The notes under the pieces were generated by a model. It saw only the letters and a list, made by a program, of their open reading frames with translations, was not told the DNA's origin and did no database searches. A stretch of DNA of 62,805 nucleotides, filler included, from Klebsormidium nitens (lineage: Eukaryota > Plantae > Klebsormidiophyceae), in NCBI GenBank assembly GCA_000708835.1. It is 4 parts of 4 records of this genome, joined end to end, with 100 filler letters (N's around TTAATTAATTAA, not from the genome) between each part and the next. Parts side by side here need not be neighbours in the genome. Positions count along the whole stretch, not along the records: positions 24,404 to 43,809 come from DF237935.1; 3 more parts are not named here. One strand, 5' to 3'. The translations under genes and the position numbers were made by a program. Shown here piece after piece: positions 24,404 through 44,267 of this stretch (its first letter is position 1; every line of letters starts with the position of its first letter).

Positions 24404-24404
24404 A

Positions 24405-24935
24405 ATGGAAGTTCCAAGAAAGGGAACGGCTTGGGGTCGAAATCGTAAGTCTCGCTCCTGACAATTTGCACAGGCTCTCTATACATGAAGAATCTCAAGC
24501 AGTGCAGATTGACAAAGCCCCACCATCGATTACAACACTCCCCCCAGAAAAGTGCACGGATTGGAGTCGATCTGAGCCGCAAGTTGTCTCGCCCCTGACA
24601 ATTTGCACAGGCTTTCTATACATGAAGACTTTTCAAGCAATGCATTTTGACAAGCCCCCGCGGCCGCCACACTAGTCCACTAGGTACTCTCCATTAAGCG
24701 CGCGGCTTGGAGTCAAAATTGTCACGTCTTGCCCAGGCGCTGTCAAATTGCACAGGCTGCTCTATGCATCGGAACTTTTTCACCTATAGCAGATTGACAA
24801 GCCTCACCATCGACGACAACCTCTTCAAAAAAGTGCAAGCCTTGGGGCCAAGCCTGGCTGGCCCGTGACAATCTGCACAATCTATCCTATACATTAAGAG
24901 AATTCAACCTATGCAGATTGACTGGCCTCTCTCTC
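24405..24935 (-). repeat. Four diverged ~140-150 bp tandem units, possibly a decayed leucine-rich-repeat coding region
   Basis: The core ctgacaatttgcacaggct…tatacatgaaga…gcagattgacaa recurs at ~24460, 24597, 24745 and 24867. The minus strand reads GFVNLHCLRFFMY / GLVKMHCLKSLHV. Confidence 0.6.
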
Positions 24936-27199
24936 GTGTACAGCTCATTTCAAACCTGAAACGGCCCAGTACTGCGGCATGGCTTGGGGGCGAAGAAGTG
25001 TCGACGACTTTTGATGCATTGGCTTGACTTGCCATATGAGACTGTCAGTACGTCAGAAAGTCACTCACTCAATAGCACGTCAACCTACTCTACTGGAGTT
25101 TTCCACAACACCACCGTCATTCAAGAGACCTGAATCAGAGAAATGGCAAGCTGCATACACATACACACCTTAGATTGCACACCAGGAGCTACTGGAGCTG
25201 GGACGGGCTGCGGCGCGACCAGCTCCTTGGTCGTTTTCTTTCAGGCTTGCTCCCACTCGCATCGGAAAGGCGCTCAGGCCCCGGCAATGCTGCCCTGCAG
25301 TGACATACGCTCATGTACTATGACACTGGCTGTACTGCATGGGGCTTAAAGGTTGCCCAGCGTCCATAGCGTATGGTTCTCGGGCCAAACCGGGCACTTT
25401 CCGTTCGGGTCAGCTGAATCCCAGATCGACGGCGCCCGGATGAACCCGGCCCATCGGACGGCTGAGAAAGTTGGGGGGAATTGGAGACTCGGCGCCGCCC
25501 CCGTCAGCCCATGCGCGCATGTCCAGCGCGCGCTAGCGCCCACTGCAAGTGCCGACTGAGTCGGCCCGGCCGCGCGGCGCCTTCTGCGACCGCCGCAGCC
25601 GGCCGCGCCGCGCGCCAGGCTGCAAGCTAGCCTAGTAATGAGAGTCCTGGCACGGCGCAGGCAATGGCTACCTCCGATGAAGCTCGGCGGTCGACTTCCT
25701 CTTTGACGAGCGCCCCTCCATCACCTTCGATCAAATACTCAAACACCGTTAAAGTCAACATGTTTCATGACCATTTTACGGATTGGGCCCATACGGCCAG
25801 CCGATGGTTCCACGATGGTCCAAAGCTCAAAAGCTCGCAACTATCCAACTATGATTGCTTCCAAGATCGTCTCTGATTTTTACAGTTCAAAAGGAGCCAC
25901 TGCAAGGACACAGTGTCATCGACTTCTTCGGATTCATTATATCATTATTGTCGAATCATGCGGTTTGTACATGTGAAGCATCAGAAGCAGAGGTTTCCGG
26001 CGACGGTCCCTGACCAGAATCAGGCTTTAATTTCCGAGTCTGTGTAACAAACGTTTGAATTGAAGAGGGGCTGGGATTCAACTGACTCCGAGAGATTGAA
26101 TTGCTTTGGCATGGTCCAAGCTGCTTAGCCACGGCGGGTTGTTTATGATCTGGCAAAAACCGAATCACGAGTACCAGTCCAAGTCTTCAGATAATCAACC
26201 ACTTATTGTGAGTCAGCGGGACTCCCAACATGTTTCCGTACCGCTTGACACGTACGCAAAGGAGGAGCGACTAGAGTGGCATTGCAGAGGCATGGCGAGA
26301 TTAGTACATGTGGAAATGTGTAAAGCTGTAGTGGGTCCCGGCTGAGGGGTCTTAGCCGAGCATTAGCCAAGGTGACTCTGCTCGATGGACTTCGAGGTAA
26401 GTCTTTTTGGATCTGGTCTGAAGAAAGAAACCATTAAACGATGGGGCGCAAGTTGTGCAAGGTTGACCTTGTGCGGGAGTCAGAATCTCGTGCCAGAGCC
26501 ACCGTTTCGCTTTGCTACGAAACTTTACGTCCCGTTCATTTACAAAGCTTTTCGAGCGTTCTTGTTGAGGAGCCTCTACGTATATACTTTGGAGTGGCAC
26601 ATAAGGCAACTGTGCCTAGCACAGCCGGAGATCGAGATCCTACTCGCCACGTGCCACCGTGGTTTCCCTCAAGCTCTCCATCGTCGATTAGTAGGTAGTG
26701 TAAATGCTTGTATGCGCCCCATGTTTGACATGCTCTACCGTGTTCAAACGAACTGGTCTACCAGAGTATCTTGGATAGTTGATTATACGCCATCTTATCG
26801 ATTCGCGACAAACGTTGCAAGCGCTCGACTGAGACAGCTGCTGAGGATTCTTCACAGCGGGATTGCGTGCGGGTTCTGAGATGGAAGTTTCTGGCACCAA
26901 TTCTCTTTTGCAGCATACCAGCATTTCGTGTATATGCATTCAAGACGTTGCTACCAGTCAGACTCTCTAAAAGTGTATCTGTGTCAAATATGTTCAAGGT
27001 ATGGAAAGAACTCTGCCTATCTGAATTGAAAAGAATGATGTAGAGGTTTCCATCACATCACTGAAAGTAAAGTACGTGCAATGAGTCACGTCTCGCTGGA
27101 AGATTCGAAAACTATTATCATAGGTGGCCGCCATGACTGCAAGTTACACGGCCGTATGCAGTAGTTCTAGAAAGATCTTCCCCTTGACCAGCGCTTGTC

Positions 27200-28976
27200 T
27201 TATTTCCCCTCGTTGCACTCTAGCTCTACCGTGCACACCGGAAGCTCGTAGTGCGGGTGAGACATTACTGTGACGTCGCCCCCATAACTTGGCGAGATGA
27301 TCACTTGCGGAACCGGCAGAAGCAGGAACAAGATCAGCGTGAATGGAGGCCCCCTGAATATTTCACCGCTCGCACACTGCTTTTGGCACTAGGGCAAGCT
27401 CGTGATTGGTGACGTTCCGAACCAGTCCCCGCCCGCTACCCTCTTTTCTGGCAGCATTCCGTTCTCCAGGATGGACGGAACGTTGGGGGGAGGAGTGCCG
27501 TGGAAGGCGAAGGTGAGCGGCGCCGTGACCTGATCGCGGGAGCCCATAAGCGATTGGAACGCACCTGCGGGGTTGAATCATCATGCGAAGTCAGGCACGG
27601 ATAACACGAATGGACGAGGTTCCATGGGCATTTCATTAGCTAAAAGCTTTCCTGCCCAAAACACCGATCCTAAATGATTTCCAATGCTTAAATATACGTA
27701 TTCGTTCTTGTAGGCTGACGTCAGAGGCGTTGTGAACATGCCGTGTACAACGTAGTCTCGTCCGCAGATCTGACGGGCATTTGTTTTGCTATGTTTATTT
27801 TCACTTTTCCCCCTTCTCCGTTCACACAGCCAATCTTGAGAGGTTATCCATGGTTCCACCTCAGCCCCAACCAACCCTACTTTCTTTCGCCGCTGTGAAG
27901 GGCGGGTACCCACCTCCCAGGTCTGCCACGTGTCCCGCCATCGCGTCCAGAAACCGCTCGTACAGCGCGCCTCCCGGCCGCGCGCGCGCGTTCACAGCGA
28001 CTCTCGAGACGCAAAGCCGAAGATGCCGTTGGCAAGTACCAATGAACGGGCTGGCAGCCGATGTTTGAACTGGACAGGACCTCATGGATGCGATCTTCGG
28101 ATTTTAGAAAGTCTAGCAGCTCCATGAGAACCTGCAAGATGGAGCAGCAGTATTGGGTAGGATACAAAGTCAACCAGAGCAAAAGGGCTGTAGCGGTGCT
28201 AGTTGAATTCTAGACCCTAAAAGTCGAATATACCTCGAGCGGCTTTAAAAATCTGGGCGCTTCTGACATCAGTTGGTTATCGAAGTATCACCTTAGCCGC
28301 TTAGGAATATCTGAGTCTTCTAGTACGTCGAGCGGGATCGGAGTATAGAGCTATAACTATGTTGAGGAGAAAAGGGCAAGCTGGCAAAAATCAAGACCGG
28401 CTCCTCATCAAGCAGAGCAGCAAAGCGGAGGCTAGAATAAATCAAAGACGGTCAAGCGCCCAGGCGCGTAGAATGTGGCGCGTAGTGACCCTGTACAAAA
28501 GCGTACGTTTGAATGCATCGTCCAACGTCGTCGATAAGGAAATCAGAACGCTTCCTGTTCAGAGTGGGGGCATCAGAAGAGGGAACATCTCGGCGCTAAG
28601 GAGTACTGGGTTGTAAAGGATTCAGAAAAACCGCCTTCTTTTCGCTTTCGTCTCCCCAGTATTTGGATCGGCGACGATGTGCATCTTTCTCCATTACCTG
28701 GCGCTTCTTCGCCGCCTCGCTCTCCGTGATCATGGCCGCGAGCGCGCGCGCGTCGTTCGGCAGCCGGTCGAACATGCACGTCGAAGAGAAGCCCCAGCGG
28801 ATGGCGCGTTCAGCGTTCGACGCCGGAGACCCGTCCCAGGCGGTCTTGAGCGTCACCACAAGGTCTTCGTCTTCAGCTTCTTTCGAGGATCTGTACGAAG
28901 AAGGGTACAGACTGTCAGAGATGATGGGCGATACGCGAAGGAAGCGTTTCGATCGATCTGGCTTCCGCAGTTTCAT
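27200..28976 (-). pseudogene. PARP-like (diphtheria-toxin fold) ADP-ribosyltransferase gene with an in-frame stop
   Basis: Last exon 27564-27200: TFAFHGTPPPNVPSILENGMLPEKRVAGGDWFGTSPITSLP*C…TLILFLLL…DVTVMSHPHYELPVCTVE. Upstream exon VAVNARARPGGALYERFLDA (~28030-27895). TAG at 27389-27391. Inclusion of the 28596-28976 exon is tentative. Confidence 0.75.
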
Positions 28977-31493
28977 AAATAACCAGGCAACTGGAAGTGA
29001 CAGCCTCTGAAAAGCTTGGCTCTGCTTCGTAAAGCGATGGACACTCGGCTAACATTCTGCTTTGCTTTCTCGACTTCAATTTTCAATCGAGGTTACTATG
29101 ATCTTCAAACGTCATTCCTTGACGTCTTCAACGACGGTTCTGAAAGCCGGGTTCTCAGCCCTACTCTGAAAACCTTAGGTCCAAATTGCAAGTCGCAATC
29201 ATCACCTGTGAGAAGCGCACGCGCGCTCCGCATTCCCGTGCTTTGCACTGTTTCGTGGCGACCTCCGCACAGTCTCCTCCAGCTGAAAAGTCGCCTCTCC
29301 CGACGCGCCTGCCGCGAGAATGGCGCGGCCAACTTTGGCATCGAATGGCTGCCACGTGCTGGAGCCGGGACGTCTCCAGCTGACCGTCAGATGCGGACCG
29401 CCTCTGACGATTGGCGGTGCTTCGGACGTCCTCGACATCCTTACAGCTGCCATCGAAGGGTAAGCAGGCTTCAACAGACAGATGGGCACAGGTTCTATAT
29501 TCCATTTCGAGAGAGTGCGCTGAAGCCTTTGAACATTGACTCGTTCAAGTGGTGATGAAAGGACGTTCAGCCCTGAGTGCAAAGCTCCAGATTTTACAAA
29601 AGATGCACCTGCTACGACGGGATGATTTATTTTGAAAACTGCAATGCCTCGAAGGATTCAGTGAGCGTTCTTTGATAGAGGAATTTTCCTTCACTTCGTC
29701 AGTCTTCAAATGTAAATCGAGCTTGCAGCTTCAGCAAACAAGCTTCTCAATAAACAACTCTCATTTGGAGCGCTAAAGTTTCTGATGGGCGAAGTTCAGA
29801 AGTAGTATCTCATTTGATGACGGCCCACATTCGTAATGCACACTCCTAAGATGATGCTGTGCTGTGACTTGACGTCACGGAATGAAAGCTAAGTTGACTC
29901 GTATCACCAAGTATCCAGCCCAGATCCCTCAAGATCAACAAGAAGTACAGGAAATAAATAGTAAATTGACACAAATCTGGTATGTCGGGCAAGGGAGCAG
30001 AGATGTACGATGACGATGATGCAAAAGAAAAAACAAATTATTTCTGAGGCATGCGCTCGCTTAAAATTTGGGCACAGTGCTGACTCCCCCAATAGATGAA
30101 GCCGAACTGCAAAGAAGCAAACTTCTGTTCCTCAAAAGGCAGTTTCTGATATCAAGGTGAGCCCCTCGCTCACTCTTCGCGCCGAAAGCTCACCTCGGCT
30201 TTTTCAGCTTTGTGATTCCTCCGCGCGCGCGCGCCCAGGAAAAATGTGCAAGGACCAGATCTGCGCTGGACCTTTTCGGACGAAGCGCCGCGCCGCCAGT
30301 CACCACCTGCACGCTAAACTAAATTGATAATTATTCTGGCCGCAGCAACGAAACCGAAAATCTCAGCATCTTCCAAACCTCCTCTTGAGCAGCGCAGAGT
30401 CACCCCGGCTCTACGCTGGCTACTTTCAAATCACTGCTCAATCTGCGGCGCACGTAGCACGTAGCTGCTCCAGCAATGTCCGATGCACCTCAATCCCTCC
30501 TGTTAAGCACCACTTTTTGGCAACTTGAAGCGATCGTTTCAGGAGGAGGGTACAGCAGAAGCCTGTGCGCATGCAGGGTGAAACCCCGCTCCGTCTCGTC
30601 AGCAAACGATCCGCCGGGCGGACGCTAGGGGCAATCCACTTTCTCGACTGACCGCACGAGACGGTGACATTCGGACGTATAGCGCCGCAGCTTTTGAAAC
30701 GCAATGATGCCCCCGCAGGTCGAGGCGGTTGTCAATATCTAGGACAATCGCAGAATATATTCGGAATTGCACCATCACACAGGTGTGTTCCGGCCAAGCT
30801 AAACATCCATTCTTCGCGTATACATTGACACTGTCCATCATGCAAGAGTCACCACGCAGGCTGCTAGGTTTTACAGCAGAGCTCAAGTCCAAATATGAGT
30901 TTTTGGAAAACCAGTCCACGAAAGGGTGCTAGCATAGGAGAAAAAGTGTATCCAGCAATATTGGTGTCAAGCGGCGGCGCTCGATGGCGTCAATGGTGGA
31001 TGACACCCAAACGCTGTTTGTGACTCTGACTGCATCTGAGGGATGTCCAAATGGTACGTTCTTGATCAGTGCCGGGCGCCTTGTTGGGTCACTTGCGATC
31101 GGTGACGTGCCATCTCCGCCTTTACGTGACACTGCATACTTCATCGATGCGTCATCCTCGTGCCCTCGTGTCCGGCGCCGCCTAGTCAGCACAAGCTGAG
31201 CCGTCCGATATGCAAATGAACGGTCGGATTGGTGACAGCTGTCAATTTGTCCCGCTGCAAGACTTCAGGCTTCCTTTCAGCACCAGGACAGACAAAGTTA
31301 AGGCTTGCATTTCAGATTTCGGAACAACTCTGCAATACTTTTCAGAGCGCAGCAATCTGGAGGTGTAAACACAAGACGCCACGGGCTCTCATCTGAAGCA
31401 CGCAGAGTCAGACCGAAAGCCGCGGCGGCCAGTGAATCTTCATTAGGGGCGCCTGCAGGCGTTGTGCGCGCATAGTATCTCTCTGCGAGGACA

Positions 31494-33340
31494 ATGGAGG
31501 GCGGCTACGAGCGCTACTGGACCTTGCAAGACTTCTTTGCGTTCAACCAGAACCTCTTAGCCCTTCGCCAACAGGTTTGTGCAAACACTCTCCCCTTTAC
31601 CATGGGAATCTGCTGCTGGTATGAGGTTCCCGGGAGTTTGGTGGAAGCTCAAGGTTTTGTTCAAAGTGACCTTTTTTTGGAAGATATTTCGATGTAATCT
31701 GATGGATTTATCATTGCCAGCACCCAGCTGACTGCGAATCTGCACAGGTATCCACGTTTTGTCAATCAAGATGAGATTCTCAAATGTACCATCACAAGTC
31801 GCCTCAGTTACCTGAGCTTTTTGTTCAACAACATGGGCACCTAGATATATGCTTAAGTTCACCACACGTGGTACTTTGAGAGAATCTTGTCATCCCACCA
31901 GAATTATCTTGAGGTTTTCCCAGAACTAGGTCGAAAACCCGCTTACTCTCTGCATCGGACTTCCTCAAGTATCAGCACTCTTTCCAATACTTAAAGAGAT
32001 GAGGACTGTTTCACCAGGTGCTGTTTCAAAGAATGGAAGCTAAAAAAACTCTTTCTCTGAAGACCAAATCAGGCATATCTCGTGCATATGCCCACAGGTC
32101 AAAGCGGGAATGTGGAACCCACCAAAATTATCTCGATTTTCTCCATTCGTTCCTTTCAAACTAACAAAAGTAGGTCGCTTCCTTCAGCATTTCAACAAAA
32201 CAAGTGTGAAAGCGTTTTACTTTTGCCATACAAAATATCAAAGTAGAATAATAAACGTGGTACAAATGTAAGCATGAATATTCTAGCTGTATCTCGCATC
32301 TCCTTTTCTTCAGGCCTGGACTCCGTTTCCTTATCTTCAATACCAAGCCTACCTGCCCCAAGCACTGGAGCCCCCAACCAAGCAACCACGCTCTGAGGCG
32401 AACGTAATCAATCGCCCCAGCCCTCCTTCAGCCAGCATATCCGACTCCTGCGGTCTCACCTCCTTCCGTTCATGTTCCGTCGCTCCGTTCACGCTTCCGT
32501 CGGAATCGTTCAGCAGCAGCAGCTGCGCGTCCTCCTCTAGTTCTCCTCGCCCGGTAGGCTCTACCGGGGATTCAAACAGGGACGACTCTAGTTCTTCCAC
32601 CAGCCGCTACGGGCCGCCGTTCAAAACGGCGCCCGGTTCTTTCGGCTCCGCTTTCGGGACGGCTTCTGAGTCCGCCACGTGTCCACTCGAGGGCTGCGCC
32701 ACGTGTCCAGTTGCAGAGCACGTGTGGTCCAACCCAGAAAGCAGTTCGAGGCCCAGACTTCCCCCGCGTTTCTGGGAGACGGCTGGAGAGAGGAGAACGG
32801 TGCGTCGAGAGAGACAAGAAGCGTTTCAAGCTGCTTACCCTCCCGCATATGTAAGATATTTCGTTGCTTTGCTCTACTGCTAAATCTTAGTTGCTCTTCT
32901 TCCTTCAAATCAAAGCTCGCTGCGCTCGCTTCTGTGCGGACGAGGTCTTTTGAAGAAGCAACCTGGAGGGCCGTCAATCATCCCGGGTACAATAGAAAAG
33001 CGCACTGACATTCAACAACGAAATGGCGCGTTCCAACTACAGGGGCCCCTGTCAAATGCCATTGGAAAATCGCTTCGCACCTGGTTCGACGCCTTGAATT
33101 AATTTCCTGGCTTCGAGTTCGCGCAGAATCGAACCGTTCCTTTTCGCGGTTCAAAGCTCGACGCTTAGAAGGTTTCAGGAGTTCCGAACTTGTCTGCAGC
33201 GGAACGCCGTTGCGCGGAACGGTCCGAACTTGCAGCGGCTCCAGACGGAGTCGCGAGCTCTGCAGCAAGCGCTGTTGACCAACGAGCCGCTCTCATTGCC
33301 GAGGCCAACTGCTAACTTCCTGCATGAAAACCCTCAGATG
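31494..33340 (+). CDS. Hypothetical spliced Ser/Pro-rich protein
   Basis: ATG exon MEGGYERYWTLQDFFAFNQNLLALRQQ ending at a GT donor (~31575); GC-rich open segment ~32330-32850 (PYLQYQAYLPQALEPP…). No recognised domain. Confidence 0.3.
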
Positions 33341-34504
33341 GTACGTCGCCATCTCTTTTTCCGCCCCGCAAGTATTGTTAAGCGAGACGGACAAACCAGC
33401 ATGTCACGAACACTTGAACCGGACACTGAAGACTGCCTGCAGGAGTTATCTCATAGCTTTTAGGCCACACGGCTCTTCCTGCCGTTTCTTTCGGTTCTTC
33501 CCTTCCTCTGATGCGGTTTTTCCCGCGTTGCTCTCCTTTTCACCTCAGTTCGCTCACTGGTTCGCCCTTCGATAGGCTCACTTCAACTCTCCCGCAAGCC
33601 TCCATCTGCTGCGTCCTCAGATCTTTGTCTTCGCTAAATCCAAGTTCGGGTACCACTGTGCAGGGTCCGTGCGCAACAGGAGCGCCCCGCGGCCGCGGCC
33701 CGAGGCACCTAGCAGGCACCCGGGAGACGGCGATCAGGCCTGCGGGCCCGCCTGAACAGATGGTCGGGAGGAAACGCCGGTTGATCGAGGCTTGGCAGAA
33801 CGAACAGCTTCAGTGAATCACTGTAGACGTGTAGGGGCACGTGCCAAAGGTCAGGCTTACTCCACTCTAGCCAATAATAGCTCGTCACTCAAACGTCGTG
33901 GAGATGCTGAAGCGGTGAAGTGCATGCAGTGCCACAGCAAAAGCCTTGGGAAAGCGAGTCTTAAGCTGAAAGACTTCACTGCATGGAATGAACGGTCGAA
34001 ACTATGATAAGCGGCCGCCCTCAGGCGCGTGGAAAAGGAGACCGTGTCGTATGCGGCGCGGCCGCATCGCCTGGCACTGCCAATCTGCACACAATCACTT
34101 ATACCTTTGTGAGCCTATCGAATATCTATACTGATAATATGTCTCCACGTATGTCCGTAATCAAATATAACAAGGGCATGCGTCCGATCGTCGAGCTACG
34201 GCGGCATGGGCGTGCATCATCTGTGCGCTTCGCACGAGGTCGGCGGGTTTTTATATGGTTTCGCCGACGCATGCCGTCACTCAGACAAGATCGATGTATA
34301 CTCAGGCGGCCGGCGATCCACAGTGGCGTCGAAGGTTGTAATTTCGGCCCGGCCCGGCCGGATGCATGACCACGTACAGTGCCGCACTTGGTACTAATTG
34401 CACCAAATGAAATATATAACCCGTGTCTAGCACGCTGGCCCCGCGTCATGTTGCAGTGCATCGCACAACATATGCAGCTGGTGTTGATTCAGGTCCGTGA
34501 TTTA

Positions 34505-34670
34505 CATCTTTACGCAACGTGTCCGAGACCGTCCTCGCCAGCGCAACGTGTCTGAGACCGTCCACGAGACCGTCCTCGCCAGCGCAACGTGTCTGAGACC
34601 GTCCACATCTTTACGCAACGTGTCCGAGACCGTCCTCGCCAGCACAACGTGTCTGAGACCGTCCTAGCGA
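34505..34670. repeat. Short tandem repeat of gcaacgtgtc(c/t)gagaccgtcc(tcgcca/ac)
   Basis: About six imperfect copies can be read directly. Confidence 0.85.
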
Positions 34671-35017
34671 GCGAGGGCCATGTTCATGCCTTCAACAATG
34701 ACATGGGCCTGATATGCACACAATCTGCAAAACTGTCCGACCACCCATGTGCGTCAGAATCCAACCAAAGTGCCGTCATCACAGATCTGGGGACTGCAGT
34801 ACGTACCAGCATGCATTTAATGCAAGCTCGCTGACATGTTGTCAGGTCGTCGCGGCGCCGTTGCAAGCGCGTGCCGATGTTGCCATGCGGGACGATAATT
34901 CTGTGCGGCTTTCCTTGTAGAGCACCGAATCCTCGCTGATCCCGGCTTAAGTTGGCTCGTGTCTCTTCAAACTCTCGAAGAAATCTAGAAAAGTGTCCTC
35001 CTGCACTTTTGAACTTC

Positions 35018-38000
35018 TCAGCTTTGCATCCGCACGCTCCGACTGATGCTCGCCTTGATACCACTCGTCTCGCCGCCATACCCGCTCATATGCGTCTTCG
35101 CCTCCCTGACTTGGCCCTTCCGGTTGATCACCGCCTTGGCATGCCGCATCCGTTGCTTAACCCTCGGGTTCTTAATCGCCTTCTTCCTATGCGGTGTCAG
35201 CCCCTTGTTCTTCTCAATCTGTTTATTTATCCCCCGTTTCCCCTCCGCCAAATCGTCCTCCGCCGCAAATCGCCCGGTTCCACGGTCGTATTTCGCGGCC
35301 TTTGCGGCCCTCTTTAGCTGGCTCTGCTCTTTGGCGGATTTGTAGAAGTCGTCTTCGAACTCGCCCGACGGCCCGGCCTCGTCCGGCTCGCTGCCGGAGG
35401 GGGATCCCCCCCGCGGGATCCGGACGTCGTGCTTCTTGCGGCGCTCGCCCAGCGTTTCTCGGACGGGCAGGTCTGCGTCGCCTGTGGAAAAGAGGTCAAG
35501 GTTGAGGAAAAGTTAAGGTTGAGTGGTGTAACCTCCGTTTTATGAAGCCGGACCCCCTCGAATCGATCCTTCGTCTGCTCATATCAGAGTCAGATTCTCC
35601 AGAAGAGAACGAGTGGGCCAGAGACTGCGTCTGGCAGCATCACAAAATCTCCAGAACTAAACCCCACTTCTCGATGTTGATGTTCGTGCAGTGCTTTCTT
35701 TGCTTCGTAGCACTTCGCACTAGGTACCGAACAAACTGGCTGTGACGTACGCATCACAACAGGGTCTCAACCAGACGTAATGTCTCAAACATCAGCAAGT
35801 AGACCCACACCCGATTCCAGCGCTTCGCCATCAAACTGAGGAAGTTTGAAGCGCAGCCGCTCTGCCGATGCTCACTTCTCAGCAGGCACGCGTGCCAAAC
35901 ATTTTTCATGCGAGAGCCAAGCAAGACGCGTTAAGAGGGACCATCCTTCGGAAAGAAAAAGCTTTCCGCGAGAAACCCCGTCGAGAGTACACGCTTGGAA
36001 GCAGGTCAAAACCATACGGTAACGCATCTTAAGTTTCCAGAAGCCGGTCAACAAATAAGCCCCTCTGCAACGCGCAATGTAAACCCCCTCGATTCGACCG
36101 CAACGGAAACAAGGCGCTCTTGAGCTTGAACAGAGCTCTTTGTCGACCAATCCCGTCACTGCTCAACACCCGCGCCTCTACGCAAAAACCGGTACACACA
36201 ACGCTTCTCTCCGTCCCCTCACCTGACAGCACGCGGGCCCTCTTTTCCGGCCGCGCCTCCTCCATCGCCGCTTGTCCCATCTTCTTCCGCTTCAACAAGT
36301 CCTCCGGCGGGGCCCCCAACTTTCCCCCCTCCTCTCGTTCGCCCTCCGCCACCAGATCCGCCACGTCATCATCGAAGTCGTCCAGCATATCCGACATGCC
36401 CGTGAGCCGTTTCACACTCTTTTGCCGCGCCCTCTCGGCCTTGGTGAGCGGCACGCGTGTGAACAGGTCCTCCTCGGCCTCGGCGCGCGCGGCCAGGCGC
36501 GCGCGCTCGCGCAGCAGCCGCTGGCTCTCGGCGCGCACCGCGTCCTCACGCACCTCCTCGGGGCGGCCCTCAATCTCCTCCGCCAGCGTGCGCAGCTGCA
36601 AGAGTTGTTTCAAACTTTCACTGTGATTTTCTCGATACAAGAAACTACGACTTTAATCAGGTAGATACGAACAAAGCCCTCATAACACCTCCTTGGGGCC
36701 GCCCTCCATCTCCTCCACCGACGTGCGCAGCTGCAGAAAACGTTCAAAGGCTTATAAATGTTTGAGACAAACGACGGGAAAAAGAAAGAGGATTCCCTTT
36801 TGAGTCAGTGGAATCACATCGTAGTGCAATCACAATCAACGTCCTCGAACCTGCGGCAGCCCTCGATCTCCTCGGCCGGTGTGGGCAGCTGCAAAAGCTT
36901 TCGAGAAACTTTTTTTCAAACCTTCGGTGCAATAAGCGTTTAGTCAATCAATCTGAAGGACTGAGCGATGCAGTCAGGATCAGCGTCCCCCGAGCACCCT
37001 CCTCGGGGCGGCCCTCAAACCCCTCCACCAGAATGCGCAGCTGCAGAAGCAAGTTTTACAACGCTAGGTATCTGAGGTTTCCACATCGTTTCGACGATTA
37101 GAGTACACCCTATAGCAGCGCCAGGCCCTGAGCGCACTTCATCGAGTCGCCGTCAATCGCTAAATCCGTACATCAGTTTCGGGCTGCGAAAGTGAAGACA
37201 CGACACATTCTCAAACGAGTGAGGACGCTAAATCGGTGGAGAAGTGCACGAAGTAGGGCGGAAGCACGAATCTCTCCCCTCAAGTAGTCAACTAGGGTCC
37301 ATCGAGCAAAGCATTGCTTCGGCTTTGACACTATCTTACCATTTTTAAGGCAGAAAGGGGAGAAGCAGACGGTAGATCGAATAAGGAGGGATCCATCCAA
37401 CCACTTTCGAGAAGGGGGGCAATCACGTCGCTACTCCGAATTGCAACGCTGGACAAAGCGGTTGCCTGAAGAAATTCTTGACAGGCACAAGCTATTTGCA
37501 GTAACTAAGCATGAGGAGGTAGAACTACTGCTCAAAAGAACTCAAGAGGAACTTCGGGCTCAACCACAGAGGCATGCGACAGACGACAAAAGTCTGGTAG
37601 CAACCTTGGAACAATCGCTCAGTCAAAGGCCAAAAGTGGGCAAGCTTCGAAGCATCAGCGGCTCCAAATAAGGACACAATAGAATCGCTTGGCATCAGCC
37701 TTTTCCCGCAGAGGGGTCCTCAGCATGGTACACGCGCACCAATACAGAGTTTGAGGCAATATGGAATCATCACTTGCCAAGGAGATTGAAACAAAACGTG
37801 TAGACATGAAATACGTCGGATCGTTCTCAACCCTGAAACTCAGACCAACAAATCACAAAATTGTGGAAATGCGACAGCATCGCCAGACATTGTTGAACCC
37901 CCCCTACAAAAGAGAGGCTTTTCGAGTGAGAGGATGCACACTGCAAGGATTTCCGAGGCTGACTGGCCCAAGAACGGTGGGCCGACCGGAAACGAAAAGT

Positions 38001-41000
38001 GAACACTGACGATGTAGAAACAGCAGGAAAAATGACAATACAACACAAGGAAAAGTTGACGCCTATTGCCGGACATGCACTCACCAGTGCGCTCCTGGAA
38101 GCCCTCCTCGCCGACTCTTTCTTCGACCGCTCCTCCTTTCGGTTTCGCTTGTCCGGATCCTCCGCCATAGCTGCAAAAATAGAGCAGAGAAGCCTTTGTA
38201 AGTACTGCAAATGCAATACGCCCAGAGTTGCCACCCGCCCAGGGAGGAAAACGTCTATATGAGCACCCGAATATGCGGCAGCTGATATCTGATGCCTCGC
38301 ACTTTCCTGCGGAAGAACACAATTGACAAACGGCTTCAACAGTATTGCAGCAATATTCCTGCCCCCAACCAAAAGCAAAAGCGCCCGGTCGTTTCCAGAA
38401 AGAACCAACACGCCAGTGACTTCAAAGCATAGAGAGACGAACGAGATGCATGTCTTACCTGCAGGGGTCATCATAGGCGGGCGGTATAACCCGTCAGCCC
38501 CTTCCTCGTCCAATTTGGACACTAGAGCGTCCGGATTGGGGCGGTATTTAAGAGCGTCCGCAGGGGCGGACGGGCCGCCAGGTGTCGCGTCACCATTGGC
38601 TGCGGGCTCCTTGGCGGCTGCCAACAGCTTGTCGATTTGGTACTGCAGCTTCTTGTCGATCGGCCGGATTTTCTGGGGGGGGGGAAGCGATAAAACAAGT
38701 CAGACTGGCTTGCCGAGACTCGGTGGAAGATTGAAGAAGCGGATTAGCAAAAGTCTCAACAAATTCGGCTGAATTTTCAAAGAGGTCTGCCTGCTATCCA
38801 GTGCTAAACCATTGGAAATGTCTGGAAGGGGTCGTCAAAAACAATGCCCACAAGAATTGGAAAGAAGTTGAGGGCCCCTTATCCTCAAGCTAGGACCCGC
38901 CCAAACCTTCGGTTCTAGGGGCGCCCAGAATAACGCCTGACTTCAGCCCCTAGATCCAAATAGGATGCACACGACATACGCCGGGAGCTGCCGCAAACAA
39001 TCCCTCCTTTCCACATGCCTTTTGACTCAACCCAAAGAAACACCGAAACAGACCCAAAATTATTGCAGCGGCAAATACAATCACAACCCACAATTTTCCG
39101 TCGTCCTACCTCGAGGAAGAGCCGCAGTTCCACCATCCTAGTTATCACCGGGTGGTCCTGCACCGGCCGCCCCTCCGCTTTCAGCAGCAAGTAGAACACG
39201 ATGTTCTGACAGTACGTCAGAAGCAGTAAATGCTTCGCCTCCAAATAGCTGATTCCGTCCTGCGTCGCATACTTCCCGTCCTTAACCGCCCTCAAAACCG
39301 GCTGCACCTTCTCGGTTATCTCCCTTAACCCCTCCCTTAACTCCCCCAGAAGCGACACCAGCTCGGGCGCCTCGCTCATCACTGCCGCCAACTTCTCTTC
39401 CCTCGTCAACGAATCCAAATCCTTCTTAACCTCCTCTACGGTGACCCCGTTTTCCTTGACCCCCTTCTTGACCCCGTTTTCTGCTCGGTTAGCGGCCGCC
39501 TCCAAAGTCTCTTCCCCGGCATCGGGGGTTTCTTTGTCGGACTCGTCCTCGCTTTCTTGGTCGTAATCTTCGGGACGCAGAGACTGCGCGAGCTTTCGCT
39601 GCTGCTCAAGTACCATCTCTTCCTCCTCGGCGGGGGCCTCTTCATCATCGGTCAGCTCAAGATCCACGTTATCTGCAAAAAAGAACATTTTTATTAGTGA
39701 ACATTTCAAATGAACTTTGACTAAAACATGGAGATCCAAGGCGCTTGTGCATGTGCCCATCAACTAGCAAAGATCCAGGAAATTCATAGATAAGGAAGGG
39801 ATAAGGAAGCGATGATATTGGACATTAGATTGCCGCCTAAGATGACTCTGCCATAACAGCAACACCCGGGCCTAGTTTTCTGAGAGTACCTGCCCCCTGA
39901 TGATCAAACACGAGACAAGCACCTGTCGTTCAGACCAACGACTTGGGCATACCAAGTGACACCCCTTTGTTGTAAGCATTACTTCCTTCGTTTGCCAGAT
40001 GTAGATGCCGCTGCGCCCTGCATTTGATGTCTTAGTCTTTTTGAGAATATGGCGTACCTCCTCCATAGTACACCTTCTTGCTCTTTCCCCACAGCTTCTG
40101 TTCATCGTCATCTTCATCCTCTTCCTCCTCATCTTGGTTGCCCACGCCCATCGCAGCCAGCTTCTGCTTCATAAATTTGGCCTGCTTTGCCAGCTTGGCC
40201 GTCATTCCACCCAGCTCCTCGTCATCGTCTTCGTCAGGATCCTGCGCAAGAAAAAGAAAAGTCAGCACTTACTGCAGTAGGAGAACACAAAAGGACTTGC
40301 CAAGCAAGGATTAAAGATGGGCGAAAGAAGTATGCTGTATTAACGAGAGAATAGGCCGGATTGCAGCTCAAGTTAGACCAAGAGCGAGCAGGAGTTTTTG
40401 ATGCATTCGAAGGTAACTTTCGTTTGAAACAGCCCCCTAAGCATCTAAATGTATAGTTCCCAGTGTAAAAATGACTAGCTCGAGAAGTGGTGGAATAATC
40501 GGTAAAACAAGCTGTTGCAGCGTTCACAGTCTTTTTGACCATTACCAGAAAGCAAGGCGCGACCGAGATCACCTCACCATCAGACCATCAAACAATCCAA
40601 TCTGCCACTTCTTTCGCACATCCTTCCAACAAAGTCAGATTTCCATCAAGAACACCTTTCTTGCATTCCATCATTCTTAAAGAAAGCAAATCAGAAGACT
40701 CACATCATCCTCAGACTCATCATCCGACTCCGCGCCCTTCACATCGAACACCGCCTCATCTTCCTCCTCGCTCCCAGACGCCTCCAAGTCCTCTTCCGCA
40801 TTCAGACCAACTTTGTCCCGCCCCTTTGCAAACTCGTCAATCTCGTCCTCAAAGTCCTCTCGCCGGTATCCCATGTTTCCATCTGCTCGCCCCATTGTGG
40901 CACCTTTACCGCCCCTGCCGGCCTGACCACCCCCCATCGCACCTCGGTTCCCTCTACCGCCCCCGCCCCTGCCCCTGCCACTACCGCCCCTGCCCCTTTG

Positions 41001-41045
41001 GCCGCCACCCCGGCCACCCCGGCCGCCCCGACCGCCCCGCGCCAT
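35018..41045 (-). CDS. SAS10: U3 snoRNP / SSU processome protein of the Sas10/Utp3/C1D family, with a neuroguidin/Lcp5-like central segment and a Sas10 C-terminal domain
   Basis: Exons 41045-40704, 40241-40058, 39672-39110, 38672-38459, 38170-38085, 36595-36223, 35481-35018, all GT/AG. RGG-rich start; APELVSLLGEL…GISYLEAKHLLLLTYCQNIVFYLLLKAEG…HPV; GDADLPVRETLGERRKKHD; C-terminal KRGINKQIEKNKGLTPHRKK…NPRVK…YGGETSGIKASISRSVR. Confidence 0.92.
36596..37050 (-). repeat. Three degenerate tandem copies of the exon-6 splice acceptor and exon start in the upstream intron
   Basis: True acceptor at 36596-98 (LRTLAEEIEGRPEE); copies at 36731-33 (LRTSVEEMEGGP), 36889-91 (LPTPAEEIEGC) and 37041-43 (LRILVEGFEGRPEE). 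Confidence 0.85.
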
Positions 41046-43539
41046 GATTTGCGCAACTCAGAAGAGAATGTCTACAAGGGCCTACAAGGGAGCAGAAGTT
41101 TGTATCCAGTAGGCCTATGCGTGGCCTTCAAAGGAGCAGTCTCAGCTCTCTGCTCGGCTCTCTGCTCGGCTCTGCGCTGCGCTGCTCTGCTCTCCACAAT
41201 TTCAGAGCTTTCTCCATAACTTAAGCCGGTAGAACACGAGCAACAGCCATTACCGGCCGTCCGATGACCGTTATCGACGGCTGACGTTGATCGGCGAAAG
41301 TGATTTCGACGGCGTTTCTCCATAACTGCCCGCCAGCCCCCAGACCCCCGGCCTCAGCCAGGGGGTTATGGGGCTCGAGAGCGGCGGCCGTATGATAGAT
41401 TCAGGGGCAAATTTCATCATAGCTTATGCTGCAACGAAGTACCCGCATGGTCGTCGAAGGTAGATCGTTATCGAACTTAAATTTCGCCCCTGGCCGTCGA
41501 AGGTTTAGTAGGTTCGAAAGCAATTATAGGCCGCGGAATACCCAGAGGCATAACCTACCGAATCGATTTCAACCTACCGGGGCATTGATAATGGAGGGCT
41601 CAGATGAAGGAGGCGGCATTCAATCGGACGGCTATCGCAGCGACTCGATATCGTGACATCACCAGCTTCGGAATCTCGTTATGCAAGTTAACCGTCCGGT
41701 AACCGAGCTAGCTTAACCCGAATCTGGCGCCATTTTCTACCACCAGCCATAGAAAGCATGGGCGCCCCATGGCGCTTTCCATCCTTATTAAACTGTCGAG
41801 CAATCTTAGTGTCCTTTTTAGCGTTAAAAAATCTAGGTTAGGTTGTTGGTCTTACCTTAGGTGACTTGAGTCGAGCTCGGCGGGGGCACTTGCATAAGCT
41901 CGCCCGCCACTGTTCATCGTCGTGATCAGCTAACTTTCTTGCTCCGCTCTACCTCTCTGAGCTCGCCCCTACCTAGCAAAAGTGGAATGAAAAGGAATGG
42001 TGGAGGGACGAGGATGAACGAGCGATGCGAGTTCTTGGTCTTGAAGGCAGTACGGGATCAGTCTATAGCGGCAGTCTGCAAAATGGCCCTAGCAAATTTC
42101 GGTGAATCCACCCTTCTTTGTTCGACATCACTCTACTGTTCGAGCGTACACTGTGTACGCTTTGTGTACTTTCACCATGACGCAATCGGCCGCGTGGTCA
42201 CGAATCTGGGGGATCGAGCAAAAATGAGAGGCTTCGCCTCGTCAGGGGATCGAACGTGGTCGATTTGCCAAGCAAAGAGAAGCTATACGCATTATACTGC
42301 GATTACACCGGGTACCGAGTGCGCTGAACAATCAATATATATCGTGTAACATGCGCGAAGCGGCCGCCCTTCGTCCGTCGAACGTTTTATCACTTTCGAA
42401 TGATTGTTCGACGATATTTTAGAGCCTACTTTTCGCCCGGTGCAAGTCACCGCCCTTTCTTTCACACTTAAAATCGGGGGGCTGCCGCCCCCCCGAGCCC
42501 CCCCGCTCCCTCCTCTGGAGGTCTTAGCGTCGTTGCACGAAAGTGGACCATAATTTGAGACAATGAGAGAATTGCCCTGTTCCGGCCGGCCGGCGACAAT
42601 GACATTGAAAGGCTGCAAGCTGTGCTCCATCAAATTGGGGCCTACCTTGACGGCCGGATCGGTCGACACGGATCGGACGGTCGAGATACGGCAATGATTG
42701 TGACGGAATGCCCTTGACGGTAAATATGACTGGAGAGGATTTGCCACGTTAGCCCCCCGCCGCGATTTACTGGTACACGAGAGGCCCGAACGTCGAAGTT
42801 CGAACCGTACAAACTTAGGGACTTGCGACGGGCTTGCGACCGGGGCACATGGGCAGCGTTCCGAGCGGTGGTTGGTGCACGAACTTAGAAAGATGAGATC
42901 AGGCCGAAAGGCTATCTTTGTAGACTTGAAGGCCCAAAGAAATTCGGACCGAGGAGCAGGGTAGGATCTGCCGGGGCAAGTGTTACTTACGGAGCAGAGG
43001 CTTCGCTGTGGGAAGTAGAGTTGCTCAGGGCTTGAATGATGGAACTTGTGGACTCACATTGTACTGAAGTCAACAGTGGGATTAGTGAAAGCAGTGGGCA
43101 GTTGTCCAAAGGACATGTGAAAGTGGAGCCAGCCTCCTTGGAGGATTGGAGCGCATTGCTTCAGGCTACTTCAGGGTTGATTACCAGCAATGCCAGCTGA
43201 GGGCAGCTGTCAAGTGCCTCACATGCGCACAGCAGCTCTGGGTTAAGGATACGTTCTCTATATTGAAATGGTGGCAGTGATTATCTGCGGCTCACATTCC
43301 GTAAGGGCCAAGAGAGCAATGGACTCTACAAGGGCTATCTGATCAGCTCAGAAGTGCCGAAGGGGAAGCAAACAAAGCAAATTGTGTGCCTCAGTTGCAT
43401 AGAGCTCGACTCCTCGGCAGCATTGCTGAGAGCGCATATGGGCAGTCAAAATCATTCTGGGGAGCAGAAGAGATGGCGGCGCAGAGGCTGTCATTCTACG
43501 GCGACAGCATGGTGCGGCATCCTGGACCCAGTGCTTTGA

Positions 43540-44267
43540 TGTAACGGCGCTAGCTTTCCGGACCTATCGCGGGGATCCCCTGGTAGTCACGCGCACGCGG
43601 GTCGCGCACACTTGTGTCATTAACGCGCAGTGCGGCCGCGAGTTAAACCCCGAGCTAGTTCCGCCGTCGGATGGTCGGATCCGGTTGAATTCAAAACGGG
43701 CATACTGTCTGAGTCTATGCATGTGCACGTACTGCAAGTCTGCGACTCATAATATCATACACATGAGATTATGCATGCAACTCCCAAGAGGGAGCAGGAA
43801 TGAGACATGNNNNNNNNNNNNNNNNNNNNNNNNNNNNNNNNNNNNNNNNNNNNTTAATTAATTAANNNNNNNNNNNNNNNNNNNNNNNNNNNNNNNNNNN
43901 NNNNNNNNNAAGTAGACTAGAAGGATGCAAGCATGGCCACCATGTCAAGGCGCCAAGAGCTCCTCACGAGAGTCTACTCGCGAGAAGAATGGTCTCCTAG
44001 CGAGATGTCTCTGCCTAATGTATGGCGTGGTCTGAGGCTAACCGTAAGACTAGCCTATCGAATCGAATACTAGCAGACTGAGCTGTGGCTCAAGTCATAA
44101 CGACTGCGAACGTGAACTAGAGTCTGCGATAACCTGCTAAGGTAACCGCGTCTCTGCAACCTAGCTCGTAAGCTATGCAACGTCTCATAAGCTATGCAAT
44201 AACAAGCAAATCATGCAATACGCTATGCAACCGATGCTCTGCTATGCCGATGTCATACAGCGTGACA
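43540..44267 (+). mobile_element. Putative LTR sequence spanning an assembly gap
   Basis: Starts TGTAAC and ends GTGACA; AT-rich short repeats (gctatgcaa). No target-site duplication; interrupted by the gap. Confidence 0.35.
43810..43909. other. Assembly gap with TTAATTAATTAA linker
   Basis: N-run, linker, N-run. Confidence 0.97.

Follow-up and report, generated by a model that had tools for sequence, protein, structure and literature searches.

Does a single gene of Klebsormidium nitens (Klebsormidiophyceae) combine two processome factors, SAS10/UTP3 and neuroguidin/Lcp5, and if it does, which of the two is it? The question is raised by a locus on the minus strand (41045..35018) of the window, the 62,805-nucleotide stretch analyzed here (filler included), in which four parts of assembly GCA_000708835.1 are joined end to end; the part that carries the locus, positions 24,404 to 43,809, comes from DF237935.1, and the piece has a G+C content of ~52%. 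An earlier note had seen here one spliced gene with Sas10-like ends and neuroguidin-like sequence after the helical Sas10/C1D domain (the C1D domain hereafter), and had proposed either a fusion or the ancestral form that preceded a duplication. Sequence comparison indicates that the mixed SAS10 and neuroguidin character is real and statistically solid. The gene is very probably an orthologue of SAS10/UTP3 (named THALLO in plants), of the single-copy type, with an Lcp5-like body that is a lineage-wide feature. Its predicted protein consists of four collinear modules: an Arg-Gly-rich and acidic N-terminal region, the protein-binding C1D domain, an Lcp5-like body of ~230 residues and the Sas10 C-terminal domain.

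One transcript and its modules

The gene runs from an ATG at 41045-41043 to a stop codon at 35020-35018 (both read from the sequence), and its seven exons hold 2223 coding nucleotides, or 741 codons, in a frame that is unbroken over the split codons. Each of the six introns is bounded by GT..AG, seen as CT..AC on the plus strand. All six splice joints were reproduced at their exact positions in contigs from four public runs belonging to four studies, and single contigs of 2283-2456 nt, one in each of three runs, cover exons 1-7. Intronic contigs have a depth 10- to 50-fold below that of the spliced ones. The runs bear two organism labels, with no difference in sequence between them, and their RNA nature is a guess; joined contigs without introns are the pattern expected from cDNA. 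Because such contigs carry all of the joints, the model of a single transcript holds, and the locus is confirmed to be transcribed as one 7-exon mRNA, as the earlier note had supposed. L001, a genomic contig from a close relative, aligns with exons 1-5 at 83-90% nucleotide identity but not with the introns, and the protein sequence of its exon 3 is 97% identical to that of K. nitens. Conservation of this kind is the pattern of a conserved coding gene.

Searches were made exon by exon or with full-length orthologue proteins, and not with the joined 741-residue product as the query. Exon 1 (40704..41045; this and all other exons lie on the minus strand) has 114 codons, begins with the ATG and ends in phase 0 at a GTGAGT donor; its joint (40240/40703) is present in four runs. 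It encodes an Arg-Gly-Gly-rich N-terminus, an acidic stretch and the motif EDEIDEF, matches the N-termini of the Closterium and Mesostigma SAS10 orthologues (phmmer) and shows 83% nucleotide identity to the contig of the close relative. The first ~55 codons (40880-41045, minus strand) form an Arg-Gly-Gly/Gly-Arg repeat of the fibrillarin/nucleolin kind. The alignment of Closterium SAS10 to this exon begins at query residue 20, and reads break off at the repeat, which leaves thin coverage at the mRNA's 5' end. Exon 2 (40058..40241; phase 1 end, joints in contigs) encodes an acidic region and the motif KLWGKSKKVYYGG, and it matches the corresponding part of ~25 SAS10 orthologues. Since exons 1 and 2 match the N-terminal parts of SAS10 orthologues only, the acidic N-terminal feature of SAS10 is present. 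The N-terminal region of the Mesostigma orthologue aligns weakly with residues 30-180 of human UTP3 (0.5 bits), with DxVDxFH and WGxxKxxYYD visible.

Exon 3 (39110..39672) contains an acidic linker followed by the C1D domain at residues 108-187 of the exon translation, where Pfam Sas10_Utp3 (PF04000) scores 79 bits (E 3.6e-22; cut-off 30). At the other end of the gene, exon 7 (35018..35481) opens with the (G)DADLP...ERRKKH segment and carries the Sas10 C-terminal domain as well as the stop codon; Pfam PF09368 is matched there over profile positions 2-74 of 74 (E 7.6e-28, 97 bits, cut-off 25). A library search with exon 7 returned 1564 relatives, and the full-length ones are SAS10 proteins. With a C1D domain that starts near residue 270 of 741 and with PF09368 present, the protein is not of neuroguidin layout. 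The Sas10-like N- and C-termini claimed by the earlier note are therefore borne out, and the motifs that it quoted are all present.

Between these modules lie exons 4-6, in which Pfam finds no domain. Exon 4 (38459..38672) encodes the first part of the Lcp5/neuroguidin-like body, with the KIRPIDKKLQYQIDKL helix, YRPNP and GLYRPP; the motif (E)KIRPIDKKLQYQIDKL spans the exon 3/4 junction, and LKYRPNPDALVSK and DGLYRPP lie within exon 4. The second part is encoded by exon 6 (36223..36595), with EEIEGRPEEV (containing EGRPEE), EEDLFTRVPLTKAE, LFTRVPLTKAE and DDFDDDVADL, and then a basic stretch. Exon 5 (38085..38170; 28 codons and a split codon, joints in contigs) is a short basic linker. It has no significant match on its own and falls between the two halves of the body when aligned with algal SAS10 and neuroguidin.

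The Lcp5-like body and its spread in green SAS10

How far does the likeness to neuroguidin extend? Among Protein Data Bank (PDB) chains, exon 4 matches human NGDN (E 2e-4), with Chaetomium Lcp5 (0.016) and yeast Lcp5 (0.13) at non-significant values, and no SAS10 chain appears at E<=10. Exon 6 alone has no PDB match, and its homology emerged only with profiles. With a profile built from the part of plant neuroguidins that follows the C1D domain, exon 4 reaches 67.6 bits (positions 1-76) and exon 6, in collinear order, 61.2 bits (positions 108-195). Plant proteins of ~320 residues that bear the name neuroguidin in their source are collinear with the C1D part of exon 3 and with exons 4, 5 and 6. 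In the reverse direction, when the post-C1D region of 12 green SAS10 proteins is made into a profile, it recovers human NGDN (1.5e-23, residues 98-273), yeast Lcp5 (1.9e-16, residues 110-317) and Chaetomium Lcp5 (6e-15) among PDB chains, while SAS10/UTP3 of human, yeast or Chaetomium does not appear at E<=10. These scores indicate that the central part of the protein and the neuroguidin/Lcp5 body, in essentially its full length, are homologous, with a likeness far above chance, and they uphold the reading of neuroguidin-like sequence after the C1D domain.

Is this combination peculiar to K. nitens? Exon 7, being specific to SAS10, was used to gather SAS10 orthologues irrespective of their middle region. 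Many of its full-length relatives carry the Lcp5-like body, at 90-139 bits across the whole 187-position profile. These include proteins of Mesostigma, Picocystis, two Closterium strains, Tetraselmis, Gonium and the fern Psilotum, as well as Pedinophyceae, Auxenochlorella (annotated as 'Something about silencing protein 10') and Cymbomonas. A core-scored search adds Chlorokybus, Spirogloea, Mesotaenium, Micromonas, Chlorella, Micractinium, Parachlorella, Picochlorum, Volvox, Astrephomene and Edaphochlamys, together with the liverworts Marchantia and Calypogeia and the lycophyte Diphasiastrum; all of the added proteins have both Pfam domains. The survey of algae that the earlier note had advised thus found the body in the SAS10 of many chlorophyte and streptophyte algae. 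Among named relatives, those closest to the gene by blastp are Diphasiastrum, the liverworts, Chlorokybus and Spirogloea.

Segment by segment, the middle of the protein is also closer to green SAS10 than to plant neuroguidin. In blastp, exon 4 scores 82 bits (62% identity) with Calypogeia SAS10 and 75 bits (54%) with the best plant neuroguidin. For exon 6 the values are 99.8 bits with Spirogloea SAS10 and 84 bits with Diphasiastrum SAS10; no neuroguidin is among its nine top blastp entries (all >=71.6 bits), and the best neuroguidin reaches 49.8 bits by phmmer. The earlier note had named, as a result that would refute it, a better alignment of the central segment with ordinary SAS10 orthologues than with NGDN/Lcp5; this is the outcome among green relatives, where exons 4 and 6 both score higher with SAS10.

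Profile-profile comparison (hhalign) shows the same extent. The neuroguidin profile aligns with green algal SAS10 over columns 13-293 (E 1.5e-70) and with land-plant SAS10 over columns 12-291 (E 7.9e-35). With animal SAS10 the alignment covers columns 12-127 and with diatoms columns 52-125, which is the C1D domain and the next helix only. Angiosperm THALLO alone still aligns over columns 12-291 (E 1.5e-24); in its alignment the YRPNP/YRPP stretch is gapped and the distal part to the DDFxDD motif is retained. The statement that Utp3/Sas10 and Lcp5/NGDN are separate proteins in yeast, animals and angiosperms is upheld insofar as human, yeast and Chaetomium SAS10 show no likeness to the body, but it has to be softened for angiosperms, whose THALLO aligns with neuroguidin along this whole span. 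Judged from these alignments, green-lineage SAS10 normally has the four-part architecture. The body is well preserved in algae of the chlorophyte and streptophyte groups, in liverworts and in the lycophyte, and it has degenerated among ferns and seed plants.

A fusion event confined to this genome is rejected on the ground that the same architecture is usual in the SAS10 of green algae, liverworts and the lycophyte, where it is found in dozens of species. The related idea that neighbouring SAS10 and neuroguidin genes were read or transcribed as one in this genome, by recent fusion or as an annotation artefact, has nothing to recommend it beyond the mixed motif content, and it can practically be dismissed: the neuroguidin-like part does not adjoin SAS10 but lies inside it, between the N-terminal modules and the C-terminal domain; there is only one C1D domain; one contig per run covers the seven exons in frame; and tblastn with neuroguidin found no second copy in the 19-kb piece.

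An entry from Marchantia polymorpha (P0394, 692 residues) has PF04000 and the Sas10 C-terminal domain, yet it is named 'U3 small nucleolar ribonucleoprotein protein LCP5' at NCBI. By its domain content, the protein is of SAS10 type, and the name is an annotation slip, explained by the Lcp5-like body.

Which paralogue, and how it came by the body

The C1D domain offers a means of telling the two paralogues apart. Searched against all PDB chains, exon 3 has human UTP3 as its best match (5e-18) and NGDN as the next (1.5e-12). The C1D domain alone scores 61.6 bits with human UTP3 and 53.3 with NGDN, a modest margin, and the C1D domain of plant neuroguidin shows the reverse pattern (NGDN 65.5, UTP3 48.9 bits). 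In the tree alignment, the identity of the K. nitens domain is 71-73% to liverwort and lycophyte SAS10, 55-69% to algal SAS10 (77% to Mesotaenium, over 60 columns of a partial row), 48-60% to plant neuroguidins, 45-52% to angiosperm THALLO and 34-40% to animal SAS10. A proline in helix 2 (VQ-P-VL) is found in K. nitens, in human UTP3 and in each of the 27 further SAS10 rows, green or animal, with coverage of the site (a gap occurs there in one row). It is replaced in seven of seven plant neuroguidins and in human NGDN, which has S-L-T at this site like the plant neuroguidins. Over its length, plant neuroguidin matches human NGDN at residues 14-280 with 115 bits and UTP3 in the C1D part only, with 43.7 bits. 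In a maximum-likelihood tree of 116 C1D columns, the gene branches just outside Zygnematophyceae and land plants, a position that fits a streptophyte alga such as Klebsormidium.

The C1D signatures, the reciprocal scores and the full-length match between neuroguidin and NGDN together place the SAS10/neuroguidin duplication before the plant-animal split, and the signatures shared with animal UTP3 put the gene on the SAS10 side, so that it is not literally pre-duplication. The suggestion of a pre-duplication ancestral form consequently stands in part: an ancestral architecture is plausible for this SAS10 paralogue, but the gene itself, with its SAS10-specific C1D signatures, is post-duplication. 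A gene already equipped with the body would have duplicated ahead of the plant-animal divergence to give SAS10 and Lcp5/NGDN; green-lineage SAS10 would have kept this Lcp5-like body, and other lineages would have lost or scrambled it. We regard such ancestral retention as the somewhat favoured account of the comparisons.

Several observations weigh against it. The C1D tree, which took in SAS10 outgroups only and no non-plant neuroguidin, nests the angiosperm neuroguidin clade within streptophyte SAS10 with support of 93/95, an ill fit to an ancient split. The body of green SAS10 is also closer to that of plant neuroguidin than the plant neuroguidin body is to human NGDN, and this closeness fits slow evolution in plants but fits a later exchange between paralogues as well. 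Loss in other lineages is a statement based on animals, two stramenopile clusters and PDB chains, and the profile-profile comparison included no fungal, amoebozoan or excavate SAS10. Finally, the contacts that the body would make in the processome, which are described below, are inferred by analogy.

Some weight attaches to a chimeric origin, in which the core of SAS10 was replaced or homogenized by neuroguidin, through exon capture or gene conversion, in the ancestor of green plants, and the body is derived. Among the groups tested, the body was detected in the SAS10 of Viridiplantae only; green SAS10 and plant neuroguidin are unusually alike (up to 60% identity in C1D, 54% in exon 4); and neuroguidin nests within streptophyte SAS10 in the C1D tree. 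Yet the C1D signatures and reciprocal scores pair the K. nitens gene with animal UTP3 and plant neuroguidin with human NGDN, and a monophyletic green SAS10 remains acceptable in the approximately unbiased (AU) test (p 0.084, not rejected). Nor do the introns of the body agree: those of angiosperm neuroguidin genes fall before GVYRPP, after RPEE and after SRNG, where the K. nitens gene has none. Only the K. nitens intron at LFLE / KIRPID (39110/38672, phase 0) coincides, lying within one codon of the angiosperm neuroguidin LFLEK / IRPID intron (loci L028, L018 and L010). Intron positions count weakly against a recent exchange between the paralogues. On balance, we consider a chimeric origin unlikely.

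Could plant neuroguidin (FIP1) instead be a young, truncated duplicate of streptophyte SAS10, resembling animal neuroguidin through retention and convergence, with the K. nitens gene representing the parent form? The topology of the C1D tree is what such an origin would give. Furthermore, in length-limited searches with exon 3 and with Picocystis SAS10, the algal matches are all of SAS10-type signature, with no neuroguidin type among the matches listed. However, plant neuroguidin matches human NGDN almost end to end, far better than it matches UTP3, and the two have neuroguidin-only signatures in common (S/A-L-T, P-T). Arabidopsis FIP1 binds FAN, the homologue of AATF, in the manner of NGDN and Lcp5 (bioRxiv 10.64898/2026.06.17.732803), and an LCP5 orthologue is listed for Chlorophyta in the available part of the supplement of Ebersberger et al. 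(PMC3919561). A young duplication is accordingly very unlikely in our estimate, and we retain the ancient duplication with retention of the body in green SAS10.

The Chlorophyta entry bears on whether algae have a separate neuroguidin at all. As far as the available part of that supplement goes, the entry might refer to the green SAS10 gene itself, since the core of green SAS10 matches yeast Lcp5 better than yeast Sas10. A search with neuroguidin gave at least 120 matches, of which the named ones are all angiosperm and the unnamed ones are of similar identity; a metagenome scan with angiosperm-specific patterns found neuroguidin loci that are all flowering-plant-like, several of them grass-like and others dicot-like. 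The literature searched yielded nothing on a separate neuroguidin in algae. It is conceivable, but decidedly doubtful, that the complete and constrained Lcp5-like body persists in the SAS10 of green algae and early streptophytes, perhaps of this genome too, because SAS10 there continues to perform some or all of the work of Lcp5, with a separate neuroguidin absent or redundant. If so, loss of the body's integrity in ferns and seed plants would reflect a sharing out of tasks with FIP1/neuroguidin, and green SAS10 would still show what the gene looked like from which both SAS10 and Lcp5 descend.

Intron 5 and relation to known systems

Intron 5 holds two further features on the minus strand. A candidate box C/D small nucleolar RNA (snoRNA) of ~94 nt lies at 37688..37781, with a C box GTGATGA at 37773-37767 and a D box CTGA at 37698-37695. 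An internal CTGA is found at 37723-37720, and a 7-bp terminal stem (CTTGGCA/TGCCAAG) flanks the boxes. The first 53 nucleotides of the candidate are all identical in the close relative's contig (L001, 6919-6971, where the contig ends), and the remaining intron is unaligned; the candidate matches no Rfam family. DNA alignment also reveals three degenerate copies of the exon 6 acceptor (TGCAG) with the first ~42 nt of the exon (LRTLAEEIEGRPEE), at 37040-36999, 36888-36851 and 36730-36689, arranged in tandem ~150 bp apart. In two of the three, GT comes next, as in a mini-exon, at the site of the angiosperm neuroguidin intron after RPEE. EGRPEE has a weak tblastn echo at 37028-36999. Contigs of the four runs contain no splice joints at these copies, and Tandem Repeats Finder reports nothing in intron 5. 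Elsewhere in the gene, a match to Rfam sR14, an archaeal snoRNA, at 39625-39677 (minus strand; 20.5 bits against a gathering threshold of 38, E 0.034) covers the coding start of exon 3 over its acceptor and was taken as chance.

By orthology, the product would be a nucleolar factor of the small subunit (SSU) processome. A role in the SSU processome and binding of Mpp10 and the U3 small nucleolar ribonucleoprotein (snoRNP) are known for the SAS10 proteins of yeast, zebrafish, human and Arabidopsis (PMC6451133, PMC5085252, bioRxiv 10.1101/175547), and SAS10 binds and stabilizes Mpp10 (PMC6451133). In yeast Sas10, the C1D domain is solvent-exposed, linker peptides touch Emg1, Bms1 and helix 18, and the C-terminus lies on the U3 snoRNP and helix 16, beside rpS9; Lcp5 sits on 5' domain rRNA, also beside rpS9 (bioRxiv 10.1101/175547). 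Going by published structures from yeast and human, the K. nitens protein would thread its C-terminal domain and linker through the processome (U3 snoRNP, Bms1 and helix 16), and the Lcp5-like body would contact pre-18S rRNA and uS4 in the extended manner of Lcp5. Arabidopsis needs THALLO for processing of the 5' external transcribed spacer (ETS), and nucleolar targeting of THALLO depends on the segment that separates its two domains (PMC5085252). NGDN binds AATF through its C1D domain (PMC5175352), and FIP1 binds FAN likewise (bioRxiv 10.64898/2026.06.17.732803).

Three known families can be compared with this gene. One of them, C1D/Rrp47 (Lrp1), has the helical PF04000 domain in common with it; these proteins are short exosome cofactors without an Lcp5-like body or a Sas10 C-terminal domain, and no specific similarity to them was seen in any search. 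Neuroguidin/Lcp5/FIP1 (At1g07840) agrees with the K. nitens protein after the C1D domain in a KxRPxDxKLxYQxxKL helix, YRPNP, GxYRPP, (E/D)GRPEE, LFTRxP and G-L-x-D-F-x-D-(D/E), in like order and spacing. However, neuroguidins are proteins of ~315-380 residues that open with the C1D domain and close with a short basic tail, whereas in the K. nitens protein ~270 residues precede the C1D domain and ~150, the Sas10 C-terminal domain among them, follow the body. Its C1D domain bears SAS10 signatures and not neuroguidin ones.

The closest family is SAS10/UTP3 itself (yeast Sas10, human UTP3 and Arabidopsis THALLO, At2g43650), with which the gene shares the order of its modules: DExDxF, WGxxKxxYY, Sas10/C1D, GD-x-D-x-P...ERR and the C-terminal domain. 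THALLO has 654 residues with domains at 242-323 and 580-654 (PMC5085252), close in length to the 741 residues of K. nitens. The K. nitens protein differs in its Arg-Gly-rich N-terminus and in an inter-domain region that is a complete Lcp5-like body, which is undetectable in human, yeast and Chaetomium SAS10 and of which the angiosperm protein keeps the first helix and the distal part only. In the papers searched, the kinship of SAS10 and Lcp5/neuroguidin is described as a shared Sas10/C1D domain only (PMC3039359, PMC5085252, PMC5175352, bioRxiv 10.1101/175547). In the green lineage, the homology extends beyond this domain over the whole neuroguidin body, which explains why automatic pipelines mislabel green SAS10 and suggests that LCP5 orthologue tables for algae need checking. 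For this genome, the annotation is one gene, SAS10/UTP3 (THALLO). The evolutionary point is modest and involves no new kind of system; green SAS10 proteins form a slowly evolving sequence set in which the divergence of two processome factors may be traced.

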